Sequence record: MG752970.1
Length of the DNA stretch: 64,000 bases
Direction: 5' to 3' (one strand)
Part shown: one piece after another, positions 1 through 24,726 of the stretch
How positions within the stretch are numbered: the first letter of the stretch is position 1
How the letters are laid out: every line of letters begins with the position of its first letter
Program-made: the position numbers and the translations under genes
Notes under the pieces: model-generated
The model's database searches: none
What the model was told of the DNA's origin: nothing
Seen by the model: only the letters and a program-made list of their open reading frames with translations

Positions 1-28
1 CCCGCCGCGATGATCAATAGTAAAGGTG

Positions 29-1888
29 TCATATTTCTGTTTTTAAATACTTCGCACGAATTTTATCGATTAGATGCGTGTTAAGCATTTTTAAAAATGC
101 ATTCGTATCTGCCACACTATTTACTGGCAAACACTTGGCCTTCGTCTTCATACATTCGTCATTTCCTCTTTCTAGCTCATCTCCAAGATATGTGATTTCT
201 GATGCATTTAATTTCAGAAATGACTCATCATATAGAGCCGATTGCTTGTCCAAACCTACACTTGAAATATCAATAGTGGTCCGACCTGTTATTCTAATTT
301 TTAAATGATCATACCACTCATAGCCTTGAAGTAGAAACTTTAGGCCTACCATGACTGATTGTCGATATTCAGGATCCAACGGTTTAATGGATACCATCGC
401 ATTGCCTCTAACTCTAATCTTGGCACTGTGAATTCCCAGTGATGCTATTTTTTGGACCAATACATCAATGACTTCGTCTTCAAGTAGAAGATGTGGATTT
501 AGACATTTCTTAAAACCAATTTCTTCTGTGTGTGCGATAAACGTAGACGGGTCATTTTTTCTGGTTCCTGAGTATTTGTTGACTCCGCCATCCGCAAAAA
601 TATCTACGTTATAAATGTGTTGATTGATGGCGCGGATAGTATTACCCGTGATAATGGCTGGGGCATCAAGACCCAATTCTCTAAGCTTCGTTGCAATCTC
701 ATCGAGCAATTTTAAATTGCTAGCACTTAATTCTGGATTGGAATTTCCACGAGCAACCAACGTGTCATCATAATCAAACGCGAATTTCTTTGATTCGATA
801 TAATCTTTATAGAAATCCAGCAGGATGGTTTTTGCCAACAAGTCTGGATCATGCGTTTTTGAAGATTCTAGATGCGACAATTGCGCCAAAATACTTCTGT
901 TACCCGGATACGTTTTTTGCATTTCTTCAGATGCATTGAGATTGTAAACGGTGGTTATATCTTCTACAGGGAGATATTTTCCTTTATCTAAAGTTTCCAT
1001 AACGTCATGAGATGATAGACCCTTCATGTCTCTATCAGGAACGTTGTTCATGACAAGATATTTTTTAGCTTTAGAAGTTTTTATTGCATGATACATTCCT
1101 TCTGTTACGTAAGTAGGTATCAGTGAAGACCATTGAGTTCCTGAAGAAAAAATAATCAGATCGGCATAATGAATAGCCGTCGCCGCTTCTTCACTGATGC
1201 GCGGGCATTTAGCGTCACCATTCACGTCTTCAAAAAAGATTGTGTCAATTGGATCATCAATGCTGTCCCATGCTACGATGTCTTCTTCATCACGTAGAAT
1301 ATGTCGCGATTTTGTAACTGCTTTAAGAAATAGACTTTCGTCAGAATTTCCAATAACCCTATCTTCTGGAATACCAATCAATTTTGCCATGATCTTACCG
1401 GCTGCAAATAGTGAATTTCCATTCATGGCAGCAATAGCCGCATAAATGATATTTGCAACAGAGAAATCGGCGTAATCGACACTTAATGCAATTGCTTGCG
1501 CAAAATAATATCTGGTGGCAGTTAGCAGTAATTCAGTTTTGTCAGCATCTAAACCCAGATTTTTAATTCGTTCTGTCATCCATGGCTCAACTTCCACTGC
1601 CGCCATGGTGATGCGTTTATTTAGAAATTTTTCTAATTCTTTTCCGCCACTGAATGTGTCATATGATCCAATGATATCCGCATACGTGGATTGATTTTTA
1701 CGAAGATCGGATGGTCCTAAAATGTTACCATTGAACACCTGGCGAACCACGCCTGTTGACAGACCATTGTCATAATAATTTGCCAACACTTGGATTTTAT
1801 GCTGATTTAAGCTGCCGCCCAACACGGCATGCAGACCCTTTTGTAGGGCAATTGATCCGGTTCCGCCGGAAAAGATGACGATATTCAT
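29..1888 (-). CDS. Fusion: N-terminal YvcK/GlmR-CofD family domain + C-terminal HAD subclass IIB (phosphomannomutase-like) domain
   Basis: N-terminal IVIFSGGTGS...DNGLSTG...PSDLRKN and FSSGTQWSSLIPT motifs of YvcK/CofD; C-terminal DYDDTL (HAD motif I), ITGN, TGRTTIDI..GLDK and YLGDELERGND resembling PMM-type HAD IIB. Confidence 0.7.
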   Translation of the reverse strand: MNIVIFSGGTGSIALQKGLHAVLGGSLNQHKIQVLANYYDNGLSTGVVRQVFNGNILGPSDLRKNQSTYADIIGSYDTFSGGKELEKFLNKRITMAAVEVEPWMTERIKNLGLDADKTELLLTATRYYFAQAIALSVDYADFSVANIIYAAIAAMNGNSLFAAGKIMAKLIGIPEDRVIGNSDESLFLKAVTKSRHILRDEEDIVAWDSIDDPIDTIFFEDVNGDAKCPRISEEAATAIHYADLIIFSSGTQWSSLIPTYVTEGMYHAIKTSKAKKYLVMNNVPDRDMKGLSSHDVMETLDKGKYLPVEDITTVYNLNASEEMQKTYPGNRSILAQLSHLESSKTHDPDLLAKTILLDFYKDYIESKKFAFDYDDTLVARGNSNPELSASNLKLLDEIATKLRELGLDAPAIITGNTIRAINQHIYNVDIFADGGVNKYSGTRKNDPSTFIAHTEEIGFKKCLNPHLLLEDEVIDVLVQKIASLGIHSAKIRVRGNAMVSIKPLDPEYRQSVMVGLKFLLQGYEWYDHLKIRITGRTTIDISSVGLDKQSALYDESFLKLNASEITYLGDELERGNDECMKTKAKCLPVNSVADTNAFLKMLNTHLIDKIRAKYLKTEI

Positions 1889-1889
1889 T

Positions 1890-3020
1890 TTATTCCTTGA
1901 TGAGTTTTACTAGACCTTCACAATATTCTTTGATGTCTAGTTTGGTGTGCTGCGTCTGAAGATCCACTATTTGTTTCGCAAATTCTGGATCATTCTTAAG
2001 CTGTGTGACCCTATTTACGACATCATCGCGGGTTGATACGTATAGGAAATTAGATAGAATATCATTTCCGCCGTATACTCTCTTTTTGTGATCCAATCTT
2101 GAATCAATGAACGTGACGCATCCTGCAAGAATAGATTCGTAAATTCGCTGATTCAGCATTTCGAATTTTTCGTATGCTTCATCTCCAATGACCACATGCG
2201 ATAGTGCTTTCTGCATTTTCAGGATCATTTCGTCGTATTTCACTGCAGCACCATACGTAGGATGCCTTAAATCTCCTACTAACTTTGGAGTAAAATCTTC
2301 GGCTTTAATTTTGCCAAATAGCTCAACATTAATAGAATCTGGTAAACCGAAATAGAATTTGATTAGATTTTTTTCTCTTCGGCCGGAGCGCATCGTGCCA
2401 CCATACGACAAATCAAATTCCTTCTGTGATTCAATTAGCGTATTTGGAACTGGGAACATGAGCGGAAATTTTTCAAATGCATACTGCTTGAAATCCTTGA
2501 TACGAATTCCAGTTTTATCGAAAGCAGTTTTTACATGATCCAAATTGTAGCTTTGAGAAATTACCGTGATATCTTCGCGAGTGATTTCAATGTTCTTGCG
2601 TTCATAATCATTCGCCCAGGGTTTCTTCTCGATAGTCGGCCAAGCCTGTTTAAGCGTGAGATTGGGATCACAGTAGAGGTAAAAGACTTTACCTTTGAAG
2701 TTGTTGATAATGTCATAAATGATTGTTTGTGTTGGGTCATCGAGTCCACCGAAATAATTGATGTTCCCATTGATAATGCATAATGCGTCATAATCTTGTG
2801 CATTTACGTCTTTATATTCGTCACCAATTTGGTGCATGATTAATCCGGGAGTTGGATTAAATGATTCTTTAGCTAATACTTTGGTGTAGGCATGAACCTC
2901 AGCACCAGCACCTAACAGCATGTTAATGAGCGAACGTGCCTCACCATTGCCGCCAGACGTGTCACGAGTTCCCCACGCGATGCGCGCACCCAGTTTAACT
3001 ACAGCGATTTTTGTTGTCAT
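1890..3020 (-). CDS. bgt: DNA beta-glucosyltransferase (T4 BGT homolog)
   Basis: Colinear similarity to T4 BGT: KIAVVKLG, INGNINYFGG, YLYCD (catalytic Asp), YGGTMRSGRREK, VIGD, RIYE. Start moved from 3218 to the ATG at 3020, downstream of a TATAAATA motif. Confidence 0.85.
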   Translation of the reverse strand: MTTKIAVVKLGARIAWGTRDTSGGNGEARSLINMLLGAGAEVHAYTKVLAKESFNPTPGLIMHQIGDEYKDVNAQDYDALCIINGNINYFGGLDDPTQTIIYDIINNFKGKVFYLYCDPNLTLKQAWPTIEKKPWANDYERKNIEITREDITVISQSYNLDHVKTAFDKTGIRIKDFKQYAFEKFPLMFPVPNTLIESQKEFDLSYGGTMRSGRREKNLIKFYFGLPDSINVELFGKIKAEDFTPKLVGDLRHPTYGAAVKYDEMILKMQKALSHVVIGDEAYEKFEMLNQRIYESILAGCVTFIDSRLDHKKRVYGGNDILSNFLYVSTRDDVVNRVTQLKNDPEFAKQIVDLQTQHTKLDIKEYCEGLVKLIKE

Positions 3021-3064
3021 TTTGTAAACCTTGAAAAATAGACCCGAATGATTGGCCTCGGGTC

Positions 3065-3072
3065 TATTTATA
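3065..3072 (-). promoter_or_regulatory. T4-type late promoter TATAAATA upstream of bgt
   Basis: Exact TATAAATA on the minus strand 45 nt before the ATG. Confidence 0.6.
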
Positions 3073-3078
3073 TGAGAA

Positions 3079-3714
3079 TTAAAGAACTGATTGCTTATCT
3101 TTGGCGCGCTTGATCCATTCGTCTCTTTCTTCAAGAGACAATTCTGACCATGGCGCGAATAGATTGCAATGTAGAGTCGGGTGATTTGCGGCGTGATGCT
3201 CGTACAGATCCTGAGCAAATTTCATGAGATTTGGATGAACATCCTCCATCAATATTTGACGATTAGACTCTTCTTTCTTTTCATTTGTCTTTTTGCCAAT
3301 TGGTATTTTGATACCAGCTGCGTCAACGTCATTTTTGATTTTGATGATAATACTCAAAATGCCATTTTCTAGATTAGCCTGAGTTACTTGAGAATTAAGC
3401 GCTAGAGGAATCACCTTGGTGAACGCACGCGTAGCTATTCCTTTATGGATATATGCATCATGTGTGCTTTCATCTTGGGCTGCAGTTTGCAATCCACTAA
3501 CAATTAAATTTCCGTCTCTCACCGTGACTGTGAGATTTTCTTCAGAATAACCGGCAACGGCGAAACACACCACGTATTCCGATTCATTTAGTCTGAGAAT
3601 GTCGTACGGTGGAAAATTACTTGTCAAAAGCTGTGTTGGATGAATGTCCAATAGACGTTCAAGTCCTACTGACATTTTTGATGCTTCGCGAAGAAGCGAG
3701 ACTAGTTCATTCAT
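3079..3714 (-). CDS. Small heat-shock protein (Hsp20/IbpA-like) with C-terminal extension
   Basis: NFPPYDI, FAVAGYS, YIHKGIATRAF, ANLENGILSI alpha-crystallin motifs. Confidence 0.85.
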   Translation of the reverse strand: MNELVSLLREASKMSVGLERLLDIHPTQLLTSNFPPYDILRLNESEYVVCFAVAGYSEENLTVTVRDGNLIVSGLQTAAQDESTHDAYIHKGIATRAFTKVIPLALNSQVTQANLENGILSIIIKIKNDVDAAGIKIPIGKKTNEKKEESNRQILMEDVHPNLMKFAQDLYEHHAANHPTLHCNLFAPWSELSLEERDEWIKRAKDKQSVL

Positions 3715-3809
3715 GATATTCTCCTTTATTAAGCAAGAAATGTTGTTGTACCCATAAGGCGTACTTCTTATTTACTGCCCGGAGAATATCATGAATGCTG
3801 ATTATTTTG

Positions 3810-5141
3810 TTACCAACCGTGAGCCTCAGCTAAATCTTTCTTTAGAGTCTCAAGGGCTTCACCCCAATTGCCATCGACGCCTTGTCTATACTGATGATGA
3901 TCCCACCACACTGATTTTTCTTTTCCAAATCTCCATTCTAGTGGTGTAGTTACTAGCATACGACCACGCTTATCCAGCATGTCGAACAGATGGAAATTGG
4001 TATTAGCCACCCCAACATAATCATCCAATTTAGTGAGGGCATTTGGCATCGCGGTGACCATATTTTCATGGTCATTTAGGTGTGAATAATCAACAACGGG
4101 CAATTTTGTTGCAGCTTGAATAGCTCTAATTTCTTCTGGATTTGGATCTCGTTGCAATATAACGATGGTTCCCTTTTTAATAGTGGAAGCCAATTCAACT
4201 GGATCTATTTCTCTATTGAATGCTCCATCATTTCCCGTTCCAGCGCGCCATGTGAGACCGATGACTGGGCCATCCATTTGATCGATTTCGTGTTTCTTTC
4301 CTAATTTAGGACGAACAAATTTAAGGCTCTCTGGTACATCCGTTCTTCCTAGCATATATGGAACATCACCTACTAGGACCGGAGTGACCTGGGCCTCACC
4401 AGCGTATATATCGAAGCCACAGTGTATGTTAAGGATCTCATCAACAACTGGGTGCATGTTAAGGAGTATCTTAGCACCTCTAGCTTGCAGATCTGGAAGG
4501 TATCTTGCAAGCATCAACATGTCACCTATGCCCTGTTCACCTAAAATTCTAAGAGTTACGCCATCCAAATCGTGTGCAGTAGGAATGGTGGTGTAATGTC
4601 TTTCTGTTGTTCGGTGGATGTAGTTATTGAAACCATTCAGGAAATCACCCAATAGAAGCTGCAAGTTACAAAGAATTCTCTTTATAGTGCGGCTGTCTGG
4701 TTTCAAATATGCAGCCTTCTTAGTATACGTTAATGCATGTTCGTATTTTCCAGTTTGTTGGAAATAACCACCAAGATTAAAGTAAGCATCTGCCAAAATA
4801 TCCTTAGGACCATTCATTTCCAGAGTTGGCATGATTTTTTGGTAAACATTTTTAGCTTTCTCAAGATGTCCATGCTTTTGATACAGAGCTCCTATTAGAA
4901 GAGCATCCGCAATGTTCCCCGTGATGTGCAGCTTCTTATTAAGAGAAGAAACTGCTGCGTCAATTTGTCCCAAAAATTCATAGCACAAAGCCGCGCCATG
5001 ATAGGCAACAGCTTGTTCTGATGGTAAATTGGAATTACCTATGTAATTCTGAATTAATTGTAGAGAATGTTTTATCGTATCTTCGTCATTAGCAAGAATA
5101 GCATTTTGTATGCTTTTTACGATATCTCCAAGGTTAAACAT
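3810..5141 (-). CDS. TPR-repeat protein with C-terminal GT-B glycosyltransferase domain
   Basis: TPR helices (AYFNLGGYFQQTGKYEHAL); EQGIGDMLMLARYLP and IGLTWRAG motifs typical of TPR-GT9-like proteins. Confidence 0.65.
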   Translation of the reverse strand: MFNLGDIVKSIQNAILANDEDTIKHSLQLIQNYIGNSNLPSEQAVAYHGAALCYEFLGQIDAAVSSLNKKLHITGNIADALLIGALYQKHGHLEKAKNVYQKIMPTLEMNGPKDILADAYFNLGGYFQQTGKYEHALTYTKKAAYLKPDSRTIKRILCNLQLLLGDFLNGFNNYIHRTTERHYTTIPTAHDLDGVTLRILGEQGIGDMLMLARYLPDLQARGAKILLNMHPVVDEILNIHCGFDIYAGEAQVTPVLVGDVPYMLGRTDVPESLKFVRPKLGKKHEIDQMDGPVIGLTWRAGTGNDGAFNREIDPVELASTIKKGTIVILQRDPNPEEIRAIQAATKLPVVDYSHLNDHENMVTAMPNALTKLDDYVGVANTNFHLFDMLDKRGRMLVTTPLEWRFGKEKSVWWDHHQYRQGVDGNWGEALETLKKDLAEAHGW

Positions 5142-5956
5142 TTAGCACTTCCTCCGGCCTTCATGAATTCTGTTAGTGGTACTCTGTGGATTTTATATCC
5201 TCGTGCATTCAGCTTATGTTCATCTTCTTTCGACATATCGTTCACGATGATGTCGGTGCCGATTGAGATAGCATTACAACCGAACGCGTCTGCTGTTTCT
5301 TTATTTACACACAGAATTTCATCAAGTCCATACGAATCTACGATAGATTCATATGACACTTCGTCAAATGCATCTCTATAGAGCATGACATGTCCATTAT
5401 CAAGTGGACAAAAACAGGTATCTAAGTGGTAGAAATTTGGATTTATCAGACGTAGAGGCTTGACAACAATCCCATAGTCAGAAAGAACCTCATATGCATA
5501 ATCTACGAATGATCTATCGGTGCGAAACCCGTAACCCATGAAGAGTAGATCATCAAGTGCATAAAGAGCGTCGCCAGCCCCTTCAAACTTCTTATCGTCC
5601 GGGGTGGCCAAACATGGTAGTTGAAGCTGACTAAATGCCTTCAAAAAATTTGCTTCTTCGCCCTGTCGCTCTGGATTGGCAAATTTACTAACTATTGCTT
5701 TATGTGATCCACCATGTTTTAGATTTTTCACGATGAGACCAGCATTTGCAGTAAAAACCTGATCTGGAAGACCTTCTTCTGGATCCATGAAGATAGCTGC
5801 ACTACCAAGCTCGTAAATTTTGGACACCAGTGAAGCAAATTGTTCACTTGCCAGTTCTCTGTTTACGGTACCAATCTTACCACTCATCCATGGGTTGATT
5901 ACATAATCGACACCAAAGAAATGGGGCTCACACATCAAGAAATTTTTGGTTTTCAT
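5117..5956 (-). CDS. Amidinotransferase / dimethylargininase (pentein) family
   Basis: VDYVINPWM, PDQVFTANAG, FEGAGD, YHLDT, KAGGSAKCLT (catalytic Cys-His-Asp). Confidence 0.8.
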   Translation of the reverse strand: MKTKNFLMCEPHFFGVDYVINPWMSGKIGTVNRELASEQFASLVSKIYELGSAAIFMDPEEGLPDQVFTANAGLIVKNLKHGGSHKAIVSKFANPERQGEEANFLKAFSQLQLPCLATPDDKKFEGAGDALYALDDLLFMGYGFRTDRSFVDYAYEVLSDYGIVVKPLRLINPNFYHLDTCFCPLDNGHVMLYRDAFDEVSYESIVDSYGLDEILCVNKETADAFGCNAISIGTDIIVNDMSKEDEHKLNARGYKIHRVPLTEFMKAGGSAKCLTLEIS

Positions 5957-6585
5957 TAGAATGATACCTTTTGGGTTCCAATTTTTAGACCATTTGAATA
6001 CACACCGACTACCGTATCAAGAATAGTTTCAAATGGAGCATAGAATCCATTTTTGGCTACGTCTATGATTAGCTTGTTCTGAATGCTAGACTTGGTGACA
6101 GCAGAAATAAAGTCTTCTTGTTCTTCTTCTTTCTTTGAAAAATCAAATGATTCGCCGTCATCCTGAATGAATGAGAAATCTGAAGTTGTAAGCAGAACTA
6201 GCAGCGTATTTGAGCAACAATTACGTGCAGGTCCTTTTAACCCAAACGAGATTGATGAATGGACGTCGGTATATTCCAAATCAAATACATAATTGCCAGA
6301 ATATCCACGGTATCTTGGTGCGTATACAACCTCTCCAATGTGAGAACGATTGCATATTACTTTGGCACTAGAATCAAGAATATCAAACATATTCTTGAAA
6401 GATTCCATCTGATAGTAATACAAAGGATTGAAATTGGGATTTTCCAAATTGGCGTAAACATCCAACCTCTTTGGTTTTTCAAAGTGCATAACTTGAAAGA
6501 AGCCACACTTGTTTTGGATTCCATTTATTAGCGAATCTTTACCAAGCCTATCGACGCCTTCAATGATGATCGATGTGTATGTCAT
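5956..6585 (-). CDS. dNMP kinase (thymidylate-kinase-like; candidate hmdCMP kinase)
   Basis: IIEGVDRLGKDS P-loop, CNRSHIGEVVY motif; same operon as the TS-fold gene. Confidence 0.7.
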   Translation of the reverse strand: MTYTSIIIEGVDRLGKDSLINGIQNKCGFFQVMHFEKPKRLDVYANLENPNFNPLYYYQMESFKNMFDILDSSAKVICNRSHIGEVVYAPRYRGYSGNYVFDLEYTDVHSSISFGLKGPARNCCSNTLLVLLTTSDFSFIQDDGESFDFSKKEEEQEDFISAVTKSSIQNKLIIDVAKNGFYAPFETILDTVVGVYSNGLKIGTQKVSF

Positions 6586-6926: not shown

Positions 6927-7346
6927 TCAAATGTTGATTCGTTCGTAGGCAAAACCGTTTTCGGTTGTGTAGTACACGTGCTTAATTCCATGGCGTATGA
7001 TCGCTTCCATACACGCAGCACATGGCCTTGCCATTCCCAGAACTGTCTTCTTTTTCTCTTGCTTTTCTCTATAGATATAGATTGAGCAATTAGAAAGATC
7101 ACGATATCTTACTTTATTGATCGCGTCAATTTCAGCATGAATGCAATGGTCAACATCAACAGTGTCGAATTTTCGGTGAACATTGAATTCTTTTTGAAGT
7201 GTGTGGGTTTTAGTTTGATTGGTGCCGACACTGAGAACATTTCTGTTGCGCGCAATGACGGCACCCATCTGAACGTATTTGTAGTCAGACGTGTATGACA
7301 CGCTCTTGGCTACATCAAACAATCGCTTATCTTTTGTGCTAAACAT
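6927..7346 (-). CDS. Zn-dependent cytidine/dCMP deaminase-fold protein
   Basis: HAE...PCAAC zinc-binding motifs. Confidence 0.75.
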   Translation of the reverse strand: MFSTKDKRLFDVAKSVSYTSDYKYVQMGAVIARNRNVLSVGTNQTKTHTLQKEFNVHRKFDTVDVDHCIHAEIDAINKVRYRDLSNCSIYIYREKQEKKKTVLGMARPCAACMEAIIRHGIKHVYYTTENGFAYERINI

Positions 7347-7382: not shown

Positions 7383-7607
7383 TTAAAAGGTTGTGGGCTT
7401 AGCTATACTTCTAACCAATTCCATAAATCCAACTTGAAGATCGGTTCTTGCTTTTTCCAGCCAGCGTGTATCTACATCTGGAATTTTAGAAATATCATCA
7501 ACTAATTGACCAACTTCTTCTGCCTTTGTCTTTACCGTATTGATGAAATGCTGCTCTTCTTCTGTGAGCTGTCTGTAGCCCTTGATGTTAGCTGTAATTT
7601 CTGCCAT
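7383..7607 (-). CDS. acb2: Anti-CBASS cyclic-oligonucleotide sponge Acb2 (T4 Vs.4 family)
   Basis: IKGYRQLTEEE...RWLEKARTDLQVGFMELVRSIAKPTTF closely matches the Acb2 pattern IKGYRDLS...[27 protein letters not shown]. Confidence 0.85.
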   Translation of the reverse strand: MAEITANIKGYRQLTEEEQHFINTVKTKAEEVGQLVDDISKIPDVDTRWLEKARTDLQVGFMELVRSIAKPTTF

Positions 7608-8443
7608 TACTCTGCCTTTTCAAATTTGTTCAACCACTTGGTAAATTGGAATTCCTTTGGAATTTTCTTGAATTCACCAGCTCGGAGGAATCTTACTTCT
7701 TCTGGACCAGAAATTGCTGGAGCCTTAATGAAATCGAACTCACCTGTTTCTACAATCTCGTCAAGCATCTTGAAGTGCCGTTCATAGACATGGAATGAAT
7801 CTGCACTGTGATGATACTCACCAAGCTGTAGGTCTGGATAAAATTCCTTAAGAGCCATCGCAACCATTTCATGAGTGAAACTGAAGCAAGGTGCATCGTT
7901 GCCCATTCCAAAAATACCATCCTGTGAGCGCATGCGAACAGTCATGTTCAGTTTGTTGTCACGAATGCGGAAATTCAGACAGTAAGTACAAGGAACGTCC
8001 TTCGTGTCAGATTGAAGATGTTCTTTGCGGAGAATCATCATGGATGCACGACGAGAATCCTTGTCCTCTTTCAGAGTATTGACCACCGTATCAAACTGAT
8101 TATCATCACCAAAGAAAATGTATTGACCATAGTTTGAATTAATTGAACCATCCGAATTGATCAGACCTCCCCACATTGAAGCGTGCTCTACAATTGAACG
8201 ATCGAATTTGTCACCCTTCAGATACCACAGAAATTCTCTCTTGATGTAATCCAACTTTAGCTTTCGTGCGGCAAATGATGGAAAGCGAACATATGGGGGA
8301 AGAGTGTAGGCGTAGTTTTCAATTTCTAAAACTAGCTGTCCTCTTGGAGAGACTTGTTTACCCTTTGCTTTTACGTCCTTGAAAATCTTTAGGAAGGATT
8401 TTTTATGTAGGCCCTTCGAACCTAGATGTGAATACTTACTCAT
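7607..8443 (-). CDS. Thymidylate-synthase-fold enzyme, probable dCMP hydroxymethylase
   Basis: Catalytic DVPCT; MRSQDGIFGMGND has Asp at the specificity position like T4 gp42 (MRSNDVVFGFRND), not Asn as in ThyA. Start at 8443 follows an AAGGAG SD. Confidence 0.8.
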   Translation of the reverse strand: MSKYSHLGSKGLHKKSFLKIFKDVKAKGKQVSPRGQLVLEIENYAYTLPPYVRFPSFAARKLKLDYIKREFLWYLKGDKFDRSIVEHASMWGGLINSDGSINSNYGQYIFFGDDNQFDTVVNTLKEDKDSRRASMMILRKEHLQSDTKDVPCTYCLNFRIRDNKLNMTVRMRSQDGIFGMGNDAPCFSFTHEMVAMALKEFYPDLQLGEYHHSADSFHVYERHFKMLDEIVETGEFDFIKAPAISGPEEVRFLRAGEFKKIPKEFQFTKWLNKFEKAE

Positions 8444-10779: not shown

Positions 10780-12177
10780 TTACTTACTGGCGTTTGCCCG
10801 AACTTCTTCGAAAGTCATGTCGCGCAGGAGTTCACCATTGCGATACACAACTTCGAGAACGGTTTCGGTAGGAGTCTTGATGAATTCCTCTTCACGCATT
10901 GTGCGATATTCACCATTCATGGTTTCACGAACAAGCTTGAGACGACCCTTCTTACTCTTCTTGCCTTGGTCAGTGATAGGATCCTTGAAGATATCACGCC
11001 CTTCACCATTCACTTGCATCCACGAGCACTTCATTGCGAACTTGAGAGTATCGCGATTGATGCCTTGAAGAAGAGCACCGCCCATACCGAAGGCGATGTT
11101 GTCTGCCGAGAAGCCATTCAGCTCCATGTTGGCCAGAATCGCACGGATAGAACGAATGTTGACACCATCACCTTGAATCAGGCGAACGTTGTTGAGAACG
11201 CGGTAACCCTTATCGTTGGTGGTTGTGCCAAATTGCTTAGCAAGAATGTTCAAGCACTTCATCACCGTGGTTTCCGGATCACCAGAGTCGGGACGAATGA
11301 CCAGGGTTGCACCGGAATCGACGACTTGCGTCTTCAGTTCCTTACCCCAGATATTTTCACATGCATTGAAGATATCGTAACCATCCGAGACGACTGCATA
11401 GATTGCACCCGGCTTTGCGAAGGCATCAACGCAGCGCTTGAACTGTGCTACTTCACCTTCACGGCCACCTGCGGTTGTAGTGCTGTGTTCAGCTGCGGGA
11501 ATACTGAATGCTGGCATGTCCTTCACATTGTAGTACTTGCGAGCAAACAGAATTGCTGTCATGGTATCAGTGCCCATGAAATTGATCAGGTGACCGAGAC
11601 CGCCAATTCCAGCACTTTCAAAAGAGCTTACACCACGAGCACCAAAATCGTGTAGCTTGAATGAGATGCCAGAAACATCGCCAGTTTCTTCAAGATACTT
11701 TGCGATAATCTTCTTGCATTCGTAGGATTGAGTTGCTACCGTTGTTGGATACCATACTGCACGAAGAAGTGCGGTTTCCAGATACGATGTCAACCAGAAG
11801 CACTTTGGGTCAGTGTTCTCGATCGTCACGAGAACATTCTTGGTAGGAATGACGCTGCCTTCTGGAACAGCCTTGATTTCAACAGGGAGCTTGCCGCCAA
11901 GCTCGTTGACGATGTACTTCCAACCTTCGTAGTTGAACGGTTCACCATGTGCTTCCCACAGAAGCTTTGCTTCTTCAACCTGATCCATGGTGATTGGATT
12001 GGTCAAATATTGCTTGATGAACATTTGCAGACCGAAAAACACGGTAGCATCGTATTCACCACCTCGTGATTCAATGTACGAGAAAACACGCTCCGTGCCT
12101 TCTGGATACTGGAGGAAGTGGGATGCCTTGTATGAATCGGTATTGAGCAACAGGTTGTTAAGTTCGGTGTGTGACAT
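10780..12177 (-). CDS. nadV: Nicotinamide phosphoribosyltransferase
   Basis: TDSYKASH, LHDFGARG, PAAEHST, VVSDGYD, VIRPDSGD, LIQGDG, FGMGG, RDT.KFAMK motifs. Confidence 0.95.
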   Translation of the reverse strand: MSHTELNNLLLNTDSYKASHFLQYPEGTERVFSYIESRGGEYDATVFFGLQMFIKQYLTNPITMDQVEEAKLLWEAHGEPFNYEGWKYIVNELGGKLPVEIKAVPEGSVIPTKNVLVTIENTDPKCFWLTSYLETALLRAVWYPTTVATQSYECKKIIAKYLEETGDVSGISFKLHDFGARGVSSFESAGIGGLGHLINFMGTDTMTAILFARKYYNVKDMPAFSIPAAEHSTTTAGGREGEVAQFKRCVDAFAKPGAIYAVVSDGYDIFNACENIWGKELKTQVVDSGATLVIRPDSGDPETTVMKCLNILAKQFGTTTNDKGYRVLNNVRLIQGDGVNIRSIRAILANMELNGFSADNIAFGMGGALLQGINRDTLKFAMKCSWMQVNGEGRDIFKDPITDQGKKSKKGRLKLVRETMNGEYRTMREEEFIKTPTETVLEVVYRNGELLRDMTFEEVRANASK

Positions 12178-12708: not shown

Positions 12709-13182
12709 TTATTCGTCCTTGATGAAGTGATTGTATGCAAATTTAACAAGGCTCTTATGGAGCTCTCTTCCATCTGCTTCGAATTCTGCATCGGTCATCC
12801 AACGAACATCACCAGTTTCAAAGTGAGGTTTGTCAAAATGCTCGATATCTTTGATTTTAGCTACATAAATGCCCATTCCAAGATGAACACCAATGTAAGT
12901 AGAAGACTCAATGTTATTCGTTCTCAAACCTAGCTCTTCCTTACCTTCACGGAGAGCTGCTTGTTTGATGTTTTCTCCATCGTCTATCTTTCCCTTTGCT
13001 ATTTGGAATCTGTCTCCACCATATGCCGGGTTAGATGGAACCATGAAGAGCATGCGAATTTGGCCATCTGGGAATTTTTTGAATGGAATCACTCCTGCGC
13101 GTTTTGGCAATCGCGTGACCTTTTCTCCATCGTCCAGTTCCCGTTCTTCTGTGTTCTGTAGTAGGTTCTTAATTAGTTGCAT
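12709..13182 (-). CDS. Nudix hydrolase
   Basis: Nudix box GKIDDGENIKQAALREGKEELG. Confidence 0.85.
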   Translation of the reverse strand: MQLIKNLLQNTEERELDDGEKVTRLPKRAGVIPFKKFPDGQIRMLFMVPSNPAYGGDRFQIAKGKIDDGENIKQAALREGKEELGLRTNNIESSTYIGVHLGMGIYVAKIKDIEHFDKPHFETGDVRWMTDAEFEADGRELHKSLVKFAYNHFIKDE

Positions 13183-13265: not shown

Positions 13266-13829
13266 TTACACGTAAGCTTGTAGAACTTGATTTGGATCTG
13301 CAACAGCAGCAACACCCGCAGGTTCGAAGCTCCAGTTAGATCCAGAACGAACTAGAGAACCAACGTGCAACGCGGTTTCAGCGCCATATTGACTGACGGA
13401 ATATCGTGCTAGAACATCACCGGTATCCACGTTTTCCAGATCAAATTTAGCATTAGCAATTTGACTGAAATTCTGACCTCGTTTAGCATATTCGTGAATG
13501 AATACGTAAAGGTCGATTTGAACCTTATCTGCTGGAACATTTGGTAGAGTGATGAAAACTTCTTCGTCTTCGCCACCATCGCGCACATCCTTTGGAATTT
13601 CTACCCCATGTGCCTTCTTGTTATTGAAGAATGCAACGTCGGTAGCTGCTCCTAGCTTCCCATTAGTATCCAAAACGAATGCGAAAATGTCTAGATCAAA
13701 TCCATACTGAGAATTCTTCAGTGGATGACTATCCCAGTGCAAACGACCTTTAAGGTTTACCAAAGAAGGAGCCACCTTCGTAAGGTCAAGAACCATTGCT
13801 GCGTTTTTGTTAAGATCAAGCATTAGCAT
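13266..13829 (-). CDS. terD: TerD/TerZ family stress protein
   Basis: LHWD...FDLDIFAF...VAFFNN...DVRDGGEDEEV..L..VP; start at 13829 after a GAGG SD. Confidence 0.85.
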   Translation of the reverse strand: MLMLDLNKNAAMVLDLTKVAPSLVNLKGRLHWDSHPLKNSQYGFDLDIFAFVLDTNGKLGAATDVAFFNNKKAHGVEIPKDVRDGGEDEEVFITLPNVPADKVQIDLYVFIHEYAKRGQNFSQIANAKFDLENVDTGDVLARYSVSQYGAETALHVGSLVRSGSNWSFEPAGVAAVADPNQVLQAYV

Positions 13830-13866
13830 GTTAGTTTCCTCGTTAACTGGTGTACGATGAAATATT

Positions 13867-14877
13867 TTATTGAGAAACATTCCTACGGTTCTCGATAATT
13901 GAGTGAATGGTCGCAATCGTCAAAACTACAACTGCTGATAATCCGGTAATGATATCGGGGATTTCGATAATGGTATTAGCAAACATCATGCCTGCTAGAA
14001 TACCGATTGACCAAAATGCTCCGTGTTCTAGATATTGAAGCTCACCCAGAGTTCCCTTATCAACCATATGAATAGTCATTGACCGAACAAACATCGCTCC
14101 CATACCAAGACCCAATCCAATGATGATAATGTTGTTTGAGATTGCAAATGCTCCAACTACTCCATCGAATGAGAATGATGCATCGAGAACGTTTAGGTAA
14201 ATGAATGATCCCAATCCAACCTTTGCTGCTGACGCAGTTCCTCGACCCTCAAGGAATTCACCAAGAAGATGAACAACAATCCAAGCAATCCCACCGAATA
14301 GTGCAGCATACATGAAATCTTCACCTTCATGCAGAAGAGCTCCAACCCACAAGACCGATGCAGCCGCAAAAACAACAGTTGATACGGTAGAGTTTTGAGT
14401 GAATTTTCCTAGAAACTGCATTACCTTTTCAATACCAGGAATCCAATGATTTTCTTTTTCTTGATCAAAGAAGAATGATAGAAAAACCATCAATAGGAAT
14501 GTTCCACCAAATCCGGCAATACTGACATGGGCGGCAGTTACCGTATCTGCATACCTTTTAGCATCTTCAAATGGTAGCAAAACCGATTGAACGAATGACA
14601 GTGAACTGGTTCCCCATACAATAAGAATTGGGAACAAAACCCGAACACCAAACACGGCAAATAACATACCCCATGTTAGGAATCGGTGTCGCCACTTGTC
14701 GTCCAAAGTTTCTAGAACCTTTGCATTGACTACCGCATTATCGAGAGACATTGATACTTCAAGCATCCCTAAAATAATGGTCTGAATTGCTGCAGCAATT
14801 CCACCCGCCATGAAATAGGTGATAACCACCGAAATAAAAGCAAAGATGAAACTTCCTTTATAATATTTTGCAAACAT
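13867..14877 (-). CDS. DUF475 / TerC-like integral membrane protein
   Basis: LEVSMSLDNAVVNAKVL, LDASFSFDGVVGAFA, YLEHGAFW motifs; multiple TM helices. Confidence 0.85.
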   Translation of the reverse strand: MFAKYYKGSFIFAFISVVITYFMAGGIAAAIQTIILGMLEVSMSLDNAVVNAKVLETLDDKWRHRFLTWGMLFAVFGVRVLFPILIVWGTSSLSFVQSVLLPFEDAKRYADTVTAAHVSIAGFGGTFLLMVFLSFFFDQEKENHWIPGIEKVMQFLGKFTQNSTVSTVVFAAASVLWVGALLHEGEDFMYAALFGGIAWIVVHLLGEFLEGRGTASAAKVGLGSFIYLNVLDASFSFDGVVGAFAISNNIIIIGLGLGMGAMFVRSMTIHMVDKGTLGELQYLEHGAFWSIGILAGMMFANTIIEIPDIITGLSAVVVLTIATIHSIIENRRNVSQ

Positions 14878-14887
14878 GATTTTTCCT

Positions 14888-15565
14888 TTAACCGATCCAT
14901 GCCTTGAGCTTTTCATTGCAGATAAGCTCATAGAAAGAATCGTCGGTCATAGAATGAGGATTTGGGATGTGTGCGAAAGCAACGTGTGGATACTGATTAG
15001 CAATTCCTTGCAAATACAGCAAATTCACCTGATTTCCAATTGCAATGAATTGATAGAAAGTGTTACCATTTGTTCCTGCCAGCACATGTTCAAACTTTGA
15101 ATTATCACCTGCATCTCCGTCTGTGATAATTCCAGCATATTGTCGCATTTGTGGCTCTGAAGCTTCTTTCTTACCACCAAACAGTCGACCAAAGAATCCA
15201 GTTTTTTCTGGTTCTACGGTCTGCTCAAATGCATCAATGATTGGTGCGTATGAGGTCCCGCTGTGTGCTTGGATGTGGCGTCCCTTTGTTTTCAGATACG
15301 AACCAACGTCGTCAGCTACCGCATTTTCGGTCAAACGCATTGATGTATCAAAGAAACCAATATCAAGTTCGCCATTGTCATCAAACTTCATGGCGGCAGC
15401 GATAAACAGGTCAATGGTGCGTTGAACCCAACCATTGGCAAATTCTTCACTCATTGAACCTGACTTGTCAATGGCAAGTTTGGTAACCATAGTTGGGATA
15501 TTTACGATCCCTGCTTTTTGTAGATTTAGTTCAAATTTCTTTGAGAGATCGAGTGCAATAGTCAT
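14888..15565 (-). CDS. vWA domain protein (TerF/TerY-associated type)
   Basis: MIDAS DKSGSM, FDDNGELD, GTSYAP, IITDG, FYQFIAIG. Confidence 0.8.
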   Translation of the reverse strand: MTIALDLSKKFELNLQKAGIVNIPTMVTKLAIDKSGSMSEEFANGWVQRTIDLFIAAAMKFDDNGELDIGFFDTSMRLTENAVADDVGSYLKTKGRHIQAHSGTSYAPIIDAFEQTVEPEKTGFFGRLFGGKKEASEPQMRQYAGIITDGDAGDNSKFEHVLAGTNGNTFYQFIAIGNQVNLLYLQGIANQYPHVAFAHIPNPHSMTDDSFYELICNEKLKAWIG

Positions 15566-16775: not shown

Positions 16776-17813
16776 TCAATACCCGATAAACGCGCAACCA
16801 ATGTCCCAGTGATCTTCAAACATTTGGCCCCTCATTTTTCGGAATTCTTCGAATGTGAACCACTTAGCCTCTTCTGCATCGTCATCTCCCTTAACTTTTG
16901 GAAGACCCTTGCCCATTTGAGACAGTTTGAAGTGGAATGCCATCGTGATGATTCTTCCACGTGTGGACCGTTTTGGATGGTCAAAGATTTTTTCAGAGAC
17001 GATTGCCCTATTCAAAACTTCTCGCTGCAATTTAATCCGTGTTTCTTCCACCAGTTCACGGATAGCGGCATCACGATATGTGTCATTACCCACATATCCA
17101 CCAGGAAGTGCCCAAAGACCTTTGCCTGGAGCATGCTTTCTCTTTACCAGTAGAATATGTCCACTTTGCGTCACCACTGCATCCGCAGTATTAAATGTTG
17201 GCTTATACGGAGAGAAAGCCCAGCGTGCATCGTGCTCGTCCTGGAAATTTCTCCATTCTACAAGATACTTGTAAGAATCCGTTTTCATGAAATCCTGAAG
17301 AAAACTGAAAACGTTGGGATGCACAAACATGCGGATGCTCTTCATCACACCACGCAGATACGCTTCACGAATTTCTGTTGCATTGATATGATCGTGATAT
17401 TCTGCCTCGACTAGATCCCATTGAGGAAACGCATTCAGATACCACGTGGTGGCGTCCTTGTCGTATCCGATTAGACCGATCTTTTCAATCGTCTTCTCAG
17501 GATGCATGTCTTTAAACTCGCTGACCCGCGATTGAACGTCACCAATCCATTTGTCATTGTTATAGATGGTGTCTTCATTTCGCATGATCGTGAGATGATC
17601 CTTAATCTCCGTGTCAACGAAGCAGGATCCAATCATTTGTGCGCGCTCTGAAAACGTGAATGGATTGTCAATATCCCTTGGAATGCCGGTACTGCCGATG
17701 ATAACCAAAACTTCTTCAGCCATCGAGTATGCTTTCTCGATCAAAGAAATATGGCCATCATGGATAGGTTGAAATCGTCCGATAAGGACTAGAAGATCGT
17801 ATTTTTTACTCAT
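16776..17813 (-). CDS. nadM: Bifunctional NMN adenylyltransferase / ADP-ribose Nudix hydrolase (NadM-Nudix)
   Basis: GRFQPIHDGH (HxGH), NPFTFSER, INATEIR, GLWALPGG..AIRELVEET, DDAEEAKW, FEDH. Confidence 0.93.
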   Translation of the reverse strand: MSKKYDLLVLIGRFQPIHDGHISLIEKAYSMAEEVLVIIGSTGIPRDIDNPFTFSERAQMIGSCFVDTEIKDHLTIMRNEDTIYNNDKWIGDVQSRVSEFKDMHPEKTIEKIGLIGYDKDATTWYLNAFPQWDLVEAEYHDHINATEIREAYLRGVMKSIRMFVHPNVFSFLQDFMKTDSYKYLVEWRNFQDEHDARWAFSPYKPTFNTADAVVTQSGHILLVKRKHAPGKGLWALPGGYVGNDTYRDAAIRELVEETRIKLQREVLNRAIVSEKIFDHPKRSTRGRIITMAFHFKLSQMGKGLPKVKGDDDAEEAKWFTFEEFRKMRGQMFEDHWDIGCAFIGY

Positions 17814-21557: not shown

Positions 21558-21857
21558 TTATGTGAGACCGAGAACTCGCTTCTGCTCTGCGGACAGTGAA
21601 GCGAGTGTGTCTTTCTTTAGCTGCTCATCTGCTAAAGTTTTCTTTCTATCTAAATCAATTGGACTTGAATCTGCGAGTTCATACCAATGATACCCAATTT
21701 GGATAGCCCATCCTTTTGATACTCTACCTTTTCCACCGTACCATCCTTTTCCAAATGCAAATTTATCTGCATCGGTTTCTTTGGTGAAATATCCGATGAC
21801 TGGACCATCACTAAATTCCCCGCCATCACCATGCACTCGCCAAATTTCCGTTATCAT
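21558..21857 (-). CDS. Hypothetical protein
   Basis: ORF coupled to the spoVR stop (ATGA overlap). Confidence 0.7.
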   Translation of the reverse strand: MITEIWRVHGDGGEFSDGPVIGYFTKETDADKFAFGKGWYGGKGRVSKGWAIQIGYHWYELADSSPIDLDRKKTLADEQLKKDTLASLSAEQKRVLGLT

Positions 21858-23371
21858 TGCTCAAATTTTCCCTTGAAGTGGATTTTGAAGTCGTGCTCTC
21901 CTTCAGAATCTACCGACTCAAGAATCACTGGTTGTTCCCAAAGATTAACGACATGCAATCCTGTACGTTCAGCTTGGTCGCTCTTCAGTGGCATCTGGGT
22001 CAGATTGTGTCGAAGTGTTAGAGCTCGCGTATTGTAGATATCTACGTCTACGACTTGAATATCTGGAACATACACAGACCGCATGTAATTATCCGACAGA
22101 ATCTTACGTACTCGATAGTAACCATCATCGTTGTGAATGGCTGAAATCGAGTAGAAATCATCTTCCTCTTGATCACTAAATGCAAACATCTTAAAGTGAC
22201 GCATGAGGTGCGGAGAGAGGAACTGAGCTACGAATGATGAGTCGTTATAGTTCATCATTGCATCTTGCACTGCATCTACCCAGTCCTTACCAATGAGGTC
22301 AGGGAACCACGTACGATCTTCTTCAGTGGGTTCTTCGCAGATTCGCTTAATGTCCTTGAACATAGCAAATCCCAAAGCATACGGATTAAAACCACTGAAA
22401 TAAGGACTGTCATAACCGGGTTGAGCCACAACCGCAGTATGACTGTGCAGGAATTCTTGGTATGCACCAGAATCCATGATGCCCTTTTCATACAGACGAG
22501 TCATGATGTAGTAATGAGTGAAGGTTGCAAAACCTTCATTCACCACCTTCGTCTGAGACTGAGGGAAGAAATACTGATTGATCTTCCGAACGATTCGGAT
22601 AATCTCTCGTTTCCAACCGGGCAATGTGGGAGCATTCTTCTCAATGAAGTACAAAATGTTGTCTTCAGGTTGAGTGATGTTGCTCTTCACTGCATCTGCT
22701 TTGGGTTTCTTTGGAACCGTCTTATCCCAAAGTTCATTGTAGTTTCGAATCTTTTCATCGAATGCTTCATACGCCCGCTTTTCTTCATCTTCAGCTCGAA
22801 GAGTTGGCGTATGAGCCCGCTTGACCTTATCCACTCCAAGATAGGCCAAGGCGTGGCAGCTATCAAGAACAGATTCCACTTCATCGAAGCCATAACGTTC
22901 TTCGCAGCTCTTGATGAACTTCTTAGCAAAGTTCATATAATCGATAATAGAGCTGGCATCCGTCCACTGCTTGAACAAATAATTGTTCTTGAACACCGCA
23001 TTGTGACCGTATCCTGCGTGTGCGATAACGAGTGCCTGCATCATCGCCGTGTTGCTGTCCATGCAGTAAGAAATGCATGGATTGGAATTGATCACAATTT
23101 CGTAAGCAAGACCCATATTACCGCTTTCATACCGGCGATGATTTGAAATGAAATCCTTACCGAACGACCAGTGGTTGTAATAGATCGGCATGCCCACAGA
23201 AGCGTAGGCATCCAACATGGCTTCTGCCGTAATGATCTCGATTTGGTTAGGATACACATTGAGTCGTAGTTCTTCCTTGGCGATCTTTGCGATCTCCTTC
23301 TCTACGATTTCCAGCATCTCAAAAGACCAATCTTGACCTGCAGTAATCAGCGGCTTTTTCTTCTTGCTCAT
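21854..23371 (-). CDS. ycgB: SpoVR/YcgB family protein
   Basis: YPNQIEII, GMPIYYNHWSFGK, GLAYEIVINSNPCI, TKVVNEGFATF. Confidence 0.93.
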   Translation of the reverse strand: MSKKKKPLITAGQDWSFEMLEIVEKEIAKIAKEELRLNVYPNQIEIITAEAMLDAYASVGMPIYYNHWSFGKDFISNHRRYESGNMGLAYEIVINSNPCISYCMDSNTAMMQALVIAHAGYGHNAVFKNNYLFKQWTDASSIIDYMNFAKKFIKSCEERYGFDEVESVLDSCHALAYLGVDKVKRAHTPTLRAEDEEKRAYEAFDEKIRNYNELWDKTVPKKPKADAVKSNITQPEDNILYFIEKNAPTLPGWKREIIRIVRKINQYFFPQSQTKVVNEGFATFTHYYIMTRLYEKGIMDSGAYQEFLHSHTAVVAQPGYDSPYFSGFNPYALGFAMFKDIKRICEEPTEEDRTWFPDLIGKDWVDAVQDAMMNYNDSSFVAQFLSPHLMRHFKMFAFSDQEEDDFYSISAIHNDDGYYRVRKILSDNYMRSVYVPDIQVVDVDIYNTRALTLRHNLTQMPLKSDQAERTGLHVVNLWEQPVILESVDSEGEHDFKIHFKGKFEQ

Positions 23372-24654: not shown

Positions 24655-24726
24655 CTGTGAAATCCTTATTGGAAGAGAGGACCATCCTCTCTTCCTATTT
24701 ACTACTCACTGAGGTACAAACTTTCC

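Follow-up and report, generated by a model that had tools for sequence, protein, structure and literature searches.

The window analysed here, the first 64 kb of the sequence record MG752970.1, belongs to the Ralstonia jumbo phage RsoM2USA. At its beginning lie the genes ORF2 and ORF1, which together with a third gene, ORF486, probably form an operon with translational coupling, whose products would synthesise an activated hexose and attach it to 5-hydroxymethylcytosine (hmC) in the phage DNA. ORF2 encodes a homolog of the T4 DNA beta-glucosyltransferase (BGT), ORF1 a fusion of a YvcK/GlmR-like domain with a HAD-IIB domain, and ORF486 a GlmU-like nucleotidyltransferase. The fusion and the nucleotidyltransferase are best read as a portable module leading from hexose-6-phosphate via hexose-1-phosphate to a nucleoside diphosphate (NDP)-hexose and feeding an hmC glycosyltransferase.

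RsoM2USA is a 343,806-bp jumbo myovirus with Ralstonia solanacearum as its host of isolation. The GC content is approximately 0.39-0.40 in the operon region and 0.38-0.48 in the remainder of the window. In GenBank all genes of the phage, ORF1 included, are annotated as "hypothetical protein". The genome paper published in 2021 gave BLAST labels to 80 ORFs, including "beta glucosyl transferase" for ORF2, "putative thymidylate synthase" for ORF10 and "bifunctional protein GlmU" for ORF486, but it left ORF1 without a label, did not connect ORF1, ORF2 and ORF486, and did not discuss DNA modification (PMC8504454).

The three genes are all located on the minus strand, in the order BGT, fusion and nucleotidyltransferase. 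The stop codon of ORF2 ends at position 1890 and the ATG of ORF1 occupies 1888..1886, leaving a gap of 1 nt, and the ATG of the nucleotidyltransferase (32..30) overlaps the stop codon TGA of ORF1 (31..29) as ATGA. The third gene was missed in the earlier reading of the window by a model (below, the original prediction), as the window contains no more than 32 nt of it. Clustering of the ORFs of 33 viral loci encoding the fusion (32 IMG/VR contigs and one uncultured 462-kb phage) placed a gene of about 250 aa beside the fusion in 32 loci, mostly directly after it and on the same strand, and this gene was seemingly missing in RsoM2USA before the end of the record was joined to its start. The gene encodes a MobA/GlmU-like nucleotidyltransferase (PF12804). 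ORF486 is 25-39% identical to these enzymes; its GenBank annotation begins at an internal Met, and as annotated it is without the N-terminal G-x-G-x-R loop. Joining the end of the record to the start of the window produced the in-frame N-terminus MTPLLLIIAAGNGTRMGSITIPK, in which G-x-G-x-R is restored. The record was thus linearised within the nucleotidyltransferase gene, from which it follows that the assembly is circular or circularly permuted.

The linkage of the three genes is conserved. By tblastn, the nucleotidyltransferase adjoins the fusion in 48 of 50 loci from phages and bacteria. When co-occurrence was counted within 10 kb of the fusion, a BGT homolog with 43-49% identity was present in 31 of the 33 independent viral loci, mostly directly upstream and on the same strand, the gap between the two genes often being less than 100 nt. 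One of the two loci without BGT has no upstream DNA and the other is L025 (L-numbers are locus labels of the present analysis). L025 is a 352-kb "viral" contig carrying a pair of the bacterial type, with no BGT within 10 kb. The pairing of BGT and fusion is far above chance; the original prediction had named their co-occurrence across phages as a check, and the pairing is conserved. Among 50,697 deposited phage records, a BGT homolog was found in 122 (T4-like phages, Enterococcus phages and others; about 28-30% identity) and the fusion together with the nucleotidyltransferase only in RsoM2USA and in the uncultured 462-kb phage LR756500.1.

The scan of prokaryotes, with one genome per species, detected 15 fusion loci, all in metagenome-assembled genomes (MAGs) and mostly in gut Bacillota. 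These loci have no BGT, and their nucleotidyltransferase gene comes before the fusion. The neighbouring genes encode GT2/GT8 glycosyltransferases, a Wzx flippase, an initiating sugar transferase (Bac_transf), an NDP-sugar epimerase, a CMP-sugar cytidylyltransferase and LicD, the phospho-alcohol transferases of the last type being present in 4 of 16 bacterial loci; the MAG loci are surface-polysaccharide clusters. In the maximum-likelihood tree, one well-supported branch (100/98) parts the BGT-linked fusions from those without BGT. The scan of positions 1-4000 for sigma-70 promoters and intrinsic terminators found sites no more frequently than in shuffled sequence, and thus gave no operon boundaries; no terminator-like site was found on the minus strand of the operon in this region.

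ORF2 matched the Pfam family PF09198 (T4-Gluco-transf) with an E-value of 7.1e-24 (84.8 bits, cutoff 27), the beta-glucosyltransferases of PHROG 7922 with 2.5e-57, and the crystal structure of T4 BGT, 1bgt, with 5.2e-39. The alignment of T4 BGT (taken from the T4 genome), ORF2 and seven operon-linked homologs included the invariant residues E22, D100, R191, R195, D258, Y261 and R269 (T4 numbering), among them the catalytic base D100 and the ligands of the UDP phosphates, R191, R195 and R269, while S189 was replaced by Thr and E272 was Glu in all but one sequence. The BGTs of the RsoM2USA type are only 24-31% identical to T4 BGT. The start of ORF2 at 3020 is supported, since the alignments with homologs start at residues 1-4. 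The T4-type hydroxymethylase ORF10 suggests that the acceptor of ORF2 is likely hmC in duplex DNA.

ORF1 extends from 1888 to 29 on the minus strand and encodes 619 aa. Its N-terminal part matched the Pfam family CofD (PF01933) at 4.9e-22 (78.9 bits, cutoff 30). All solved relatives found by sequence for the N-domain were YvcK/UPF0052 proteins, 2ppv being matched by the profile at 2.8e-23, and no sequence matches to CofD or FbiA were found in the PDB and profile comparison. The AlphaFold2 (AF2) model constructed from 33 homologs (pLDDT 92, pTM 0.89) predicts a rigid packing of the YvcK-like domain on the HAD domain. Foldseek comparison of this model with the PDB placed YvcK structures in the top eight positions (target TM-score, TMt, 0.71-0.78), and FbiA and CofD ranked lower (TMt 0.59-0.65; E-value 9e-9 for FbiA). 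No YvcK-like viral structure was found in BFVD. With TIGR01826, the YvcK subfamily of NCBIfam, ORF1 scored 61.5 bits, far under the cutoff of 196, and its N-domain is thus a divergent relative and no YvcK orthologue. The motifs GGTGS, YDNGLSTG, GPSDLRKNQ and SGTQWSSLIPTY are kept in phage and bacterial members alike, and no other part of the fusion is as conserved as the YvcK-like domain. Within YDNGLSTG, the first Asp (D40) is invariant in A1, a phage-dominated alignment of 33 fusion sequences, and the second position is Asn, likewise found in the staphylococcal homolog 2ppv ("DNGGSTG"). GlmR of Listeria, Bacillus subtilis and Staphylococcus aureus has been reported to make UDP-N-acetylglucosamine (UDP-GlcNAc) from GlcNAc-1-phosphate and UTP (PMC10128056, PMC13046274), and its catalysis needs an Asp pair, D38/D39 in B. 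subtilis (PMC13046274). Homologs of ORF1 include hundreds of full-length sequences with about 40% identity, 662 at E ≤ 0.001 among the candidates scored; many are on contigs of 130-370 kb, and some have precomputed assignments to PF08282 (HAD-IIB) or PF03332 (eukaryotic phosphomannomutase, PMM).

The C-terminal part of ORF1 alone (about 255-283 aa) had no match in Pfam or the PDB, and homolog profiles were needed. With a profile of 20 homologs, the top 17 PDB matches were all PMMs or the alpha-phosphoglucomutase (alpha-PGM) of L. lactis (3e-13 to 2e-4). The best of these, 7myv (3e-13) and 4bnd (1.5e-11), were aligned over the full length, while of the phosphatase subfamilies the Cof-like PfHAD1 reached 0.002-0.035 and the trehalose-6-phosphate phosphatases (T6PP) an E-value of about 1. 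Foldseek also placed 4bnd and PMMs on top, and the C2B cap, between motifs II and III, aligns with those of PMM and 4bnd. The HAD motifs are D372-Y-D374-D-T376 (I), T414-G-N (II), K548 (III) and G-D570-E...G-N-D577 (IV); D372, D374, T376 and K548 are invariant in all 39 fusion sequences compared, and D570 and D577 of motif IV in A1. The motif ITYLGDELERGND, at residues 564-577, was aligned to the PMM motif IV "FFGDrtdkGGND". Two cap arginines, R494 and R509, are conserved in the fusion family and align with R123 and R141 of PMM2, two of its three phosphate-clamping cap arginines, the third falling in a deletion. Motif I is DLDGT in the bacterial-type fusions and DYDDT in the phage type. Judged by these comparisons, the C-domain is closer to PMM and alpha-PGM than to Cof, T6PP, sucrose-phosphate phosphatase (SPP) or mannosyl-3-phosphoglycerate phosphatase (MPGP).

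The original prediction had recognised much of this from the letters of the window: a T4 BGT homolog with the catalytic residues kept, of which E22, D100, R191, R195 and R269 proved invariant, the gap of 1 nt, and a 619-aa fusion of a YvcK/CofD and a PMM-type HAD-IIB domain, an assignment on which PF01933, the PDB profiles and Foldseek agree. The C-terminal YLGDELERGND, in which it had seen a resemblance to PMM-type mutases, does align with PMM motif IV, and the domain-wise Foldseek and profile searches it had proposed returned YvcK structures for the N-domain and 4bnd and PMMs for the C-domain.

The family profile of the nucleotidyltransferases matched the uridyltransferase domain of GlmU best among the PDB structures (1.3e-16 over positions 1-202 of 249), and IspD and TarI matched it in the nucleotide-binding half only. 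The Arg of G-x-G-x-R, the catalytic Lys and the GD metal site are invariant in 20-23 family members. For the AF2 model (pLDDT 93), the top 45 Foldseek matches included only sugar-1-phosphate nucleotidyltransferases (GlmU, RmlA, ST0452, HddC and GMPPA/B; query TM-score, TMq, 0.68-0.83), LicC was at rank 46, and none of CofC, FbiD and IspD were among the top 50. A CofC-like identity was ruled out by the sequence profile and the fold ranking. The enzyme is a single domain of about 250-264 aa, with no acetyltransferase beta-helix as in the C-terminus of GlmU, and all its scores with the NCBIfam GlmU models were far under their cutoffs.

The best PDB match of ORF10 was the T4 dCMP hydroxymethylase (1b49/1b5e, 1.2e-22), with E. 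coli ThyA at approximately 1e-10. At the diagnostic positions of the thymidylate synthase (TS) family defined by Lee et al. 2026 (PMC13326640), ORF10 has Asp at those of EcThyA L143 and N177, and D169 is kept. Asp at the first two positions points to dCMP as the substrate and to a non-methyl product, and ORF10 appears more likely to be a dCMP hydroxymethylase than a TS. A 5-hydroxy-dCMP synthase of the RB69 type was ruled out, the diagnostic D169N being absent. ORF6 matched the thymidylate kinases of PHROG 761 at 1.8e-6 and had no match in the PDB. RsoM2USA also encodes a canonical TS, ORF473 (243 bits), a MazG-like NTP pyrophosphatase, ORF477, and according to the genome paper a DHFR (PMC8504454). 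A hydroxymethylase, a separate TS, a MazG-like enzyme, a dCMP deaminase and a DHFR constitute the T4 pattern, which makes hmC the likely acceptor base in the DNA of RsoM2USA. Homologs of ORF10 and ORF6 were each present in 19 of the 33 viral loci, those of ORF6 beside the BGT gene; guanylate-kinase-like genes were present in 17, DinG-like helicases in 16 and MazG-like pyrophosphatases in 12. In many related phage loci guanylate-kinase-like and MazG/PRA-PH-like genes follow the nucleotidyltransferase (L003 12602-13261, L005 9524-9973 and equivalents); these nucleotide-pool enzymes extend the conserved block, and the MazG-like ORF477 of RsoM2USA is about 7 kb off across the record junction.

Taken together, these genes suggest the following pathway. 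By homology, ORF10 would make hydroxymethyl-dCMP (hm-dCMP) before replication, hm-dCMP would be phosphorylated, with ORF6 as the candidate kinase, and then incorporated, while the MazG-like ORF477 would deplete dCTP. The HAD-IIB domain of ORF1, from its subfamily assignment, would convert hexose-6-phosphate to hexose-1-phosphate as a mutase of the PMM or alpha-PGM type, and ORF486, from its fold and catalytic residues, would combine hexose-1-phosphate with an NTP, probably UTP, into NDP-hexose. The invariant residues of the BGT homolog suggest that it would place the hexose onto hmC in duplex DNA by the inverting mechanism of T4 BGT, with D100 as the base. The pay-off would be hmC DNA shielded from host nucleases independently of the host UDP-sugar pool. 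In bacteria the pair is located beside unrelated Leloir glycosyltransferases, which speaks for a soluble NDP-sugar as its product and against a product made on DNA. The YvcK/GlmR-like domain probably provides a conserved fourth catalytic activity in the same precursor pathway, the candidate roles being a second nucleotidyl or phospho transfer, supply of the bisphosphate activator of the mutase, and sensing of UDP-sugar. The coordinates of the features are collected in Table 1.

Table 1. Features of the predicted hmC glycosylation pathway of RsoM2USA, in window coordinates unless another record or locus is named.
Feature	Coordinates	Strand	Basis
DNA beta-glycosyltransferase (T4 BGT / GT63 homolog), ORF2, 376 aa	1890..3020	-	PF09198, PHROG 7922, 1bgt
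YvcK/GlmR-like (CofD-superfamily) N-domain of ORF1, residues 1-345	854..1888	-	PF01933, 2ppv, Foldseek
HAD-IIB C-domain (PMM / alpha-PGM type) of ORF1, residues 366-619	32..793 (stop 31..29)	-	HAD motifs, PDB profile, Foldseek
GlmU-like sugar-1-phosphate nucleotidyltransferase, 5' end, ATG 32..30	1..32	-	Record-end join, profile, Foldseek
ORF486, remainder of the same gene	MG752970.1 343,806..343,044, outside the window		Far end of the record
dCMP hydroxymethylase homolog, ORF10	7607..8443	-	1b49/1b5e, diagnostic residues
P-loop dNMP-kinase-like protein, ORF6, candidate hm-dCMP kinase	5956..6585	-	PHROG 761
dCMP deaminase, ORF8, T4-like pyrimidine rerouting set	6927..7346	-	PF00383 8.6e-15
Methyltransferase inserts	L004 9192-10004; L015 4786-5598; L008 8970-9992; L033 8781-9587

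The core idea of the original prediction, that the phage itself supplies an activated sugar to its DNA transferase, is supported by this conserved operon. Its further suggestion of a sugar other than glucose fared less well, as nothing in the sequence shows this and glucose is a fair default. Glucose is taken as the default donor sugar because the BGT residues are kept, the HAD domain is structurally closest to an alpha-PGM and glucose-6-phosphate (Glc-6-P) is abundant. About the same probability is given to a hexosamine or a different hexose, room for these being left by the GlmU/GlmR-flavoured relatives, the distinct BGT clade, the methyltransferase in some loci and an NDP-sugar short-chain dehydrogenase/reductase (SDR). 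The methyltransferase, of class I and S-adenosylmethionine dependent (Methyltransf_31/23, 1e-10), lies between BGT and fusion in five viral loci; it hints that the sugar or a precursor is methylated in some relatives, with perhaps an O-methylated sugar adduct as the result. The SDR is ORF358, of the NDP-sugar 4,6-dehydratase/epimerase family, located outside the window among structural genes (MG752970.1 225,112-226,089; L051 2613-3590). It was labelled "GDP-mannose 4,6-dehydratase" in the genome paper (PMC8504454). In the present comparison it is a generic SDR under every NCBIfam cutoff, with dTDP-glucose 4,6-dehydratase as the best match (3.4e-40), and a scan of the viral contigs with ORF358 gave no useful relatives and no link to the operon. 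It could tailor the NDP-sugar of the operon.

Several points weigh against this reading of the operon. A mutase and a nucleotidyltransferase suffice for the route from Glc-6-P to UDP-glucose, and the strongly conserved YvcK-like domain is then left over. Proteins of the GlmR type have been reported as uridyltransferases (PMC10128056, PMC13046274), so that ORF1 and ORF486 could share the work in another way than outlined here. In the phage nucleotidyltransferase, a Gly stands opposite Gln76, the residue with which GlmU reads uracil, and a nucleotide other than UTP may therefore be used. Motif IV of the HAD domain is G-N-E...G-(N/H/A/S)-E in the bacterial-type fusions (L036-L050 and L025), compared with G-D-E...G-N-D in the phage type, and PMM-like HAD-IIB enzymes can be phosphatases, the sequence not telling mutase from phosphatase. 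All parts of the scheme are drawn from sequence and predicted structure.

Other divisions of labour have been considered. The original prediction had ORF1 alone convert sugar-6-phosphate to sugar-1-phosphate and further to UDP-sugar, in which case ORF486 would serve another substrate or be a redundant back-up. The reported D38/D39-dependent synthesis of UDP-GlcNAc from GlcNAc-1-phosphate and UTP by GlmR (PMC10128056, PMC13046274) speaks for this scheme, as do the first Asp, D40, kept in the phage domain with the second position Asn as in 2ppv, the common fusion of consecutive pathway enzymes, and the pTM of 0.89, which suggests a fixed arrangement of the domains. It is nevertheless considered unlikely: a catalytically intact nucleotidyltransferase accompanies the fusion in 48 of 50 loci, which is unexpected for a redundant enzyme, and the fusion stays far under the NCBIfam YvcK cutoff (61.5 against 196 bits). 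Nucleotidyl transfer is assigned more economically to the coupled GlmU-like ORF486 than to the YvcK domain. A scheme in the style of CofC/CofD would instead have the nucleotidyltransferase turn X-phosphate into NDP-X and the CofD-like domain put X-phosphate on hmC or glucosyl-hmC, releasing NMP and leaving a phosphodiester-linked adduct, with the HAD domain making or trimming the phosphorylated precursor and BGT using host UDP-glucose. The N-domain is indeed a member of the CofD superfamily, for which NDP-X + ROH -> RO-P-X + NMP is the one transferase reaction that is firmly established, its motifs are very strongly constrained, FbiA is a significant structural match (E-value 9e-9), a nucleotidyltransferase gene beside a CofD-like gene recalls CofC/CofD, LicD is present in 4 of 16 bacterial loci, and phage SP-15 has a comparable phosphodiester-linked DNA adduct, phosphoglucuronate (PMC5977210). 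However, the N-domain is nearer to YvcK/GlmR than to CofD/FbiA (TMt 0.76 against 0.64, all sequence matches being UPF0052), the nucleotidyltransferase is GlmU/RmlA-like over its full length, including the sugar-binding half, and not CofC/IspD-like, the HAD domain is of a mutase subfamily, and the bacterial pair adjoins ordinary Leloir glycosyltransferases. This scheme is therefore regarded as quite unlikely, and the related alternative of the original prediction, phospho-transfer by the CofD domain onto the glycosylated base, is weakened by the same nature of the partner and by the ordinary glycosyltransferases served by the pair in bacteria.

A role apart from DNA, in which the sugar donor would serve the host envelope or virion proteins and the adjacency of BGT would reflect only shared timing of expression, appears very improbable. 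The bacterial relatives do serve surface polysaccharide synthesis, the viral contig L025 has the pair with no BGT near it, and RsoM2USA encodes GT9-like proteins and the NDP-sugar SDR elsewhere. On the other side, 31 of 33 viral loci have BGT linked to the fusion, mostly at gaps of 0-50 nt, and also carry homologs of the hm-dCMP synthase and the dNMP kinase; a single well-supported branch (100/98) splits the BGT-linked from the BGT-less fusions, and the catalytic and UDP-binding residues of BGT are invariant.

Phages of the RsoM2USA type may carry an hmC adduct that has not been described, a non-glucose hexose or hexosamine or a phosphodiester-linked sugar made via the YvcK/CofD-type enzyme; this is a realistic, though less probable, outcome.

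The module is found in a large group of almost entirely uncultured jumbo-phage contigs, some exceeding 300 kb, of which RsoM2USA is the sole cultured representative, and it is thus directly testable there. On galU hosts, T-even phages are known to be vulnerable through their dependence on the host UDP-sugar pool. Sugar self-supply, if true, would free hmC glycosylation from this pool and may permit another sugar, which matters when the sensitivity of such DNA to type IV restriction or further defences is to be predicted, and when it is sequenced or cloned. YvcK/GlmR proteins occur widely and their biochemistry is under debate, and the fusion version, in phages and bacterial polysaccharide clusters, offers a clean system for identifying their reaction; an undescribed adduct, if true, would give the YvcK/CofD family its first role in nucleic-acid modification together with a defined reaction. 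The results also bear on annotation: ORF1 is listed as "hypothetical", ORF486 is truncated by the linearisation, and ORF10 is likelier a dCMP hydroxymethylase than a TS.

Other genes of the window include several with recognisable affinities. ORF9 (7383-7607, minus strand, 74 aa), between the dCMP deaminase and hydroxymethylase genes, matched the Acb2/Tad1 hairpin domain (PF24729, 2.2e-15), a fold used by the phage sponges that take up signalling nucleotides of CBASS and Thoeris. ORF5 (5117-5956, minus strand) resembles arginine dihydrolase or dimethylargininase (NF052232 at 2.4e-73, below cutoff; Pfam DDAH_eukar) and was called "nitrate reductase" in the genome paper (PMC8504454). ORF4 (3810-5141, minus strand) has N-terminal TPR repeats followed by about 270 C-terminal aa with no family match, and ORF60 (46489-47295, minus strand) is a glycosyltransferase of GT9-like type (1.9e-7). 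In related loci the operon has neither of them as a conserved neighbour, and either could be a further sugar-handling enzyme. An NAD+ salvage set is formed by ORF14 (10780-12177), ORF16 (12709-13182) and ORF22 (16776-17813), all on the minus strand, its members including an NAMPT-type phosphoribosyltransferase (5e-58) and a NUDIX protein; the genome paper lists an NMNAT/Nudix bifunctional enzyme in it (PMC8504454). The set is similar to the NAD-reconstitution pathways with which phages counter defences that deplete NAD. According to the same paper, ORF17-19 (13266-15565, minus strand) are a Ter-type set of TerD-like, TerC/DUF475 and vWA proteins, and ORF28 and ORF30 (21854-26670) a PrkA/SpoVR pair (PMC8504454).

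Literature searches combining CofD, YvcK or 2-phospho-L-lactate transferase with phage or hmC gave nothing relevant, and the jumbo-phage survey of Iyer et al. makes no mention of such a module. The enzyme set, and a YvcK/CofD-type protein in a DNA-modification operon, were thus not found in the literature searched, while the principle is precedented. The claim of the original prediction that the route had not been described holds for the enzyme set but not for the principle, which is established for RB69 and DLP3 and predicted for SP-15 and Pootjesviridae.

In comparison to known systems, RsoM2USA shares with T4 (gp42, gp1, gp56 and b-gt) homologs of the hydroxymethylase, a dNMP-kinase-like protein, an NTP pyrophosphatase, dCMP deaminase, a canonical TS and a BGT in which the catalytic and UDP-binding residues are all kept. 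T4, however, uses host UDP-glucose and is without the mutase, the nucleotidyltransferase and the YvcK-like partner, and these were found in none of the approximately 120 T4-like or Enterococcus-phage records with BGT. Phage-encoded synthesis of UDP-arabinose feeding DNA arabinosyltransferases has been established experimentally in RB69, DLP3 and HY126 (PMC13326640). There, too, an enzyme of the TS family provides the acceptor, and the NDP-sugar used by a DNA glycosyltransferase is built by phage enzymes, a HAD protein and a nucleotidyltransferase among them. The differences are that their acceptor is 5-hydroxycytosine, made by a TS homolog with D169N, whereas ORF10 keeps D169; that their route includes an isomerase, a kinase and a HAD phosphatase in place of a PMM-type mutase; and that other transferases and no YvcK/CofD-like component are involved. 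The dihydroxypentyluracil (DHPU) cluster of Bacillus phage SP-15 is predicted to encode PMM, UTP-glucose-1-phosphate uridylyltransferase, UDP-glucose dehydrogenase, glycosyltransferases and a TagF-like phosphotransferase (PMC5977210). SP-15 is thus similar in having its own mutase and nucleotidyltransferase, predicted to give UDP-glucose for modification of a DNA base, but the base is derived from thymine, the enzymes are of other families and unfused, neither a BGT homolog nor a YvcK-like domain is present, and the assignments are bioinformatic only. A supply of NDP-sugar for DNA glycosylation has also been predicted in Pootjesviridae, with a UDP-galactofuranose mutase (PMC13326640, PMC5977210), and glycosyltransferases are paired with epimerases in TET-type clusters (bioRxiv 2023.12.21.572611).

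Among the cellular systems, YvcK/GlmR of Firmicutes, a UDP-GlcNAc-binding regulator and accessory uridyltransferase, is the best match of the N-domain in both sequence and structure, and its glycine-rich loop, D-(D/N)-G-x-S-x-G and GxGSxxTSxxP-like motif are kept in the phage domain. The phage protein differs in its fusion to a HAD domain and in having the genes of a GlmU-like enzyme and a glycosyltransferase as partners, whereas YvcK/GlmR lies in the yvcJ-glmR-whiA operon. The CofC/CofD pair of F420 biosynthesis (FbiD/FbiA) shares the superfamily of the N-domain and an adjacent nucleotidyltransferase gene; unlike it, the module of RsoM2USA has no F420 genes, includes a nucleotidyltransferase of the sugar-1-phosphate type, and has a structural match weaker than that to YvcK. 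The ManB/ManC and Pgm/GalU pairs of polysaccharide clusters combine a mutase and a nucleotidyltransferase near glycosyltransferases, as do the bacterial relatives of the module, but they use the alpha-D-phosphohexomutase superfamily, while the predicted mutase of the module is a eukaryote-like HAD-IIB enzyme joined to a YvcK-like domain.

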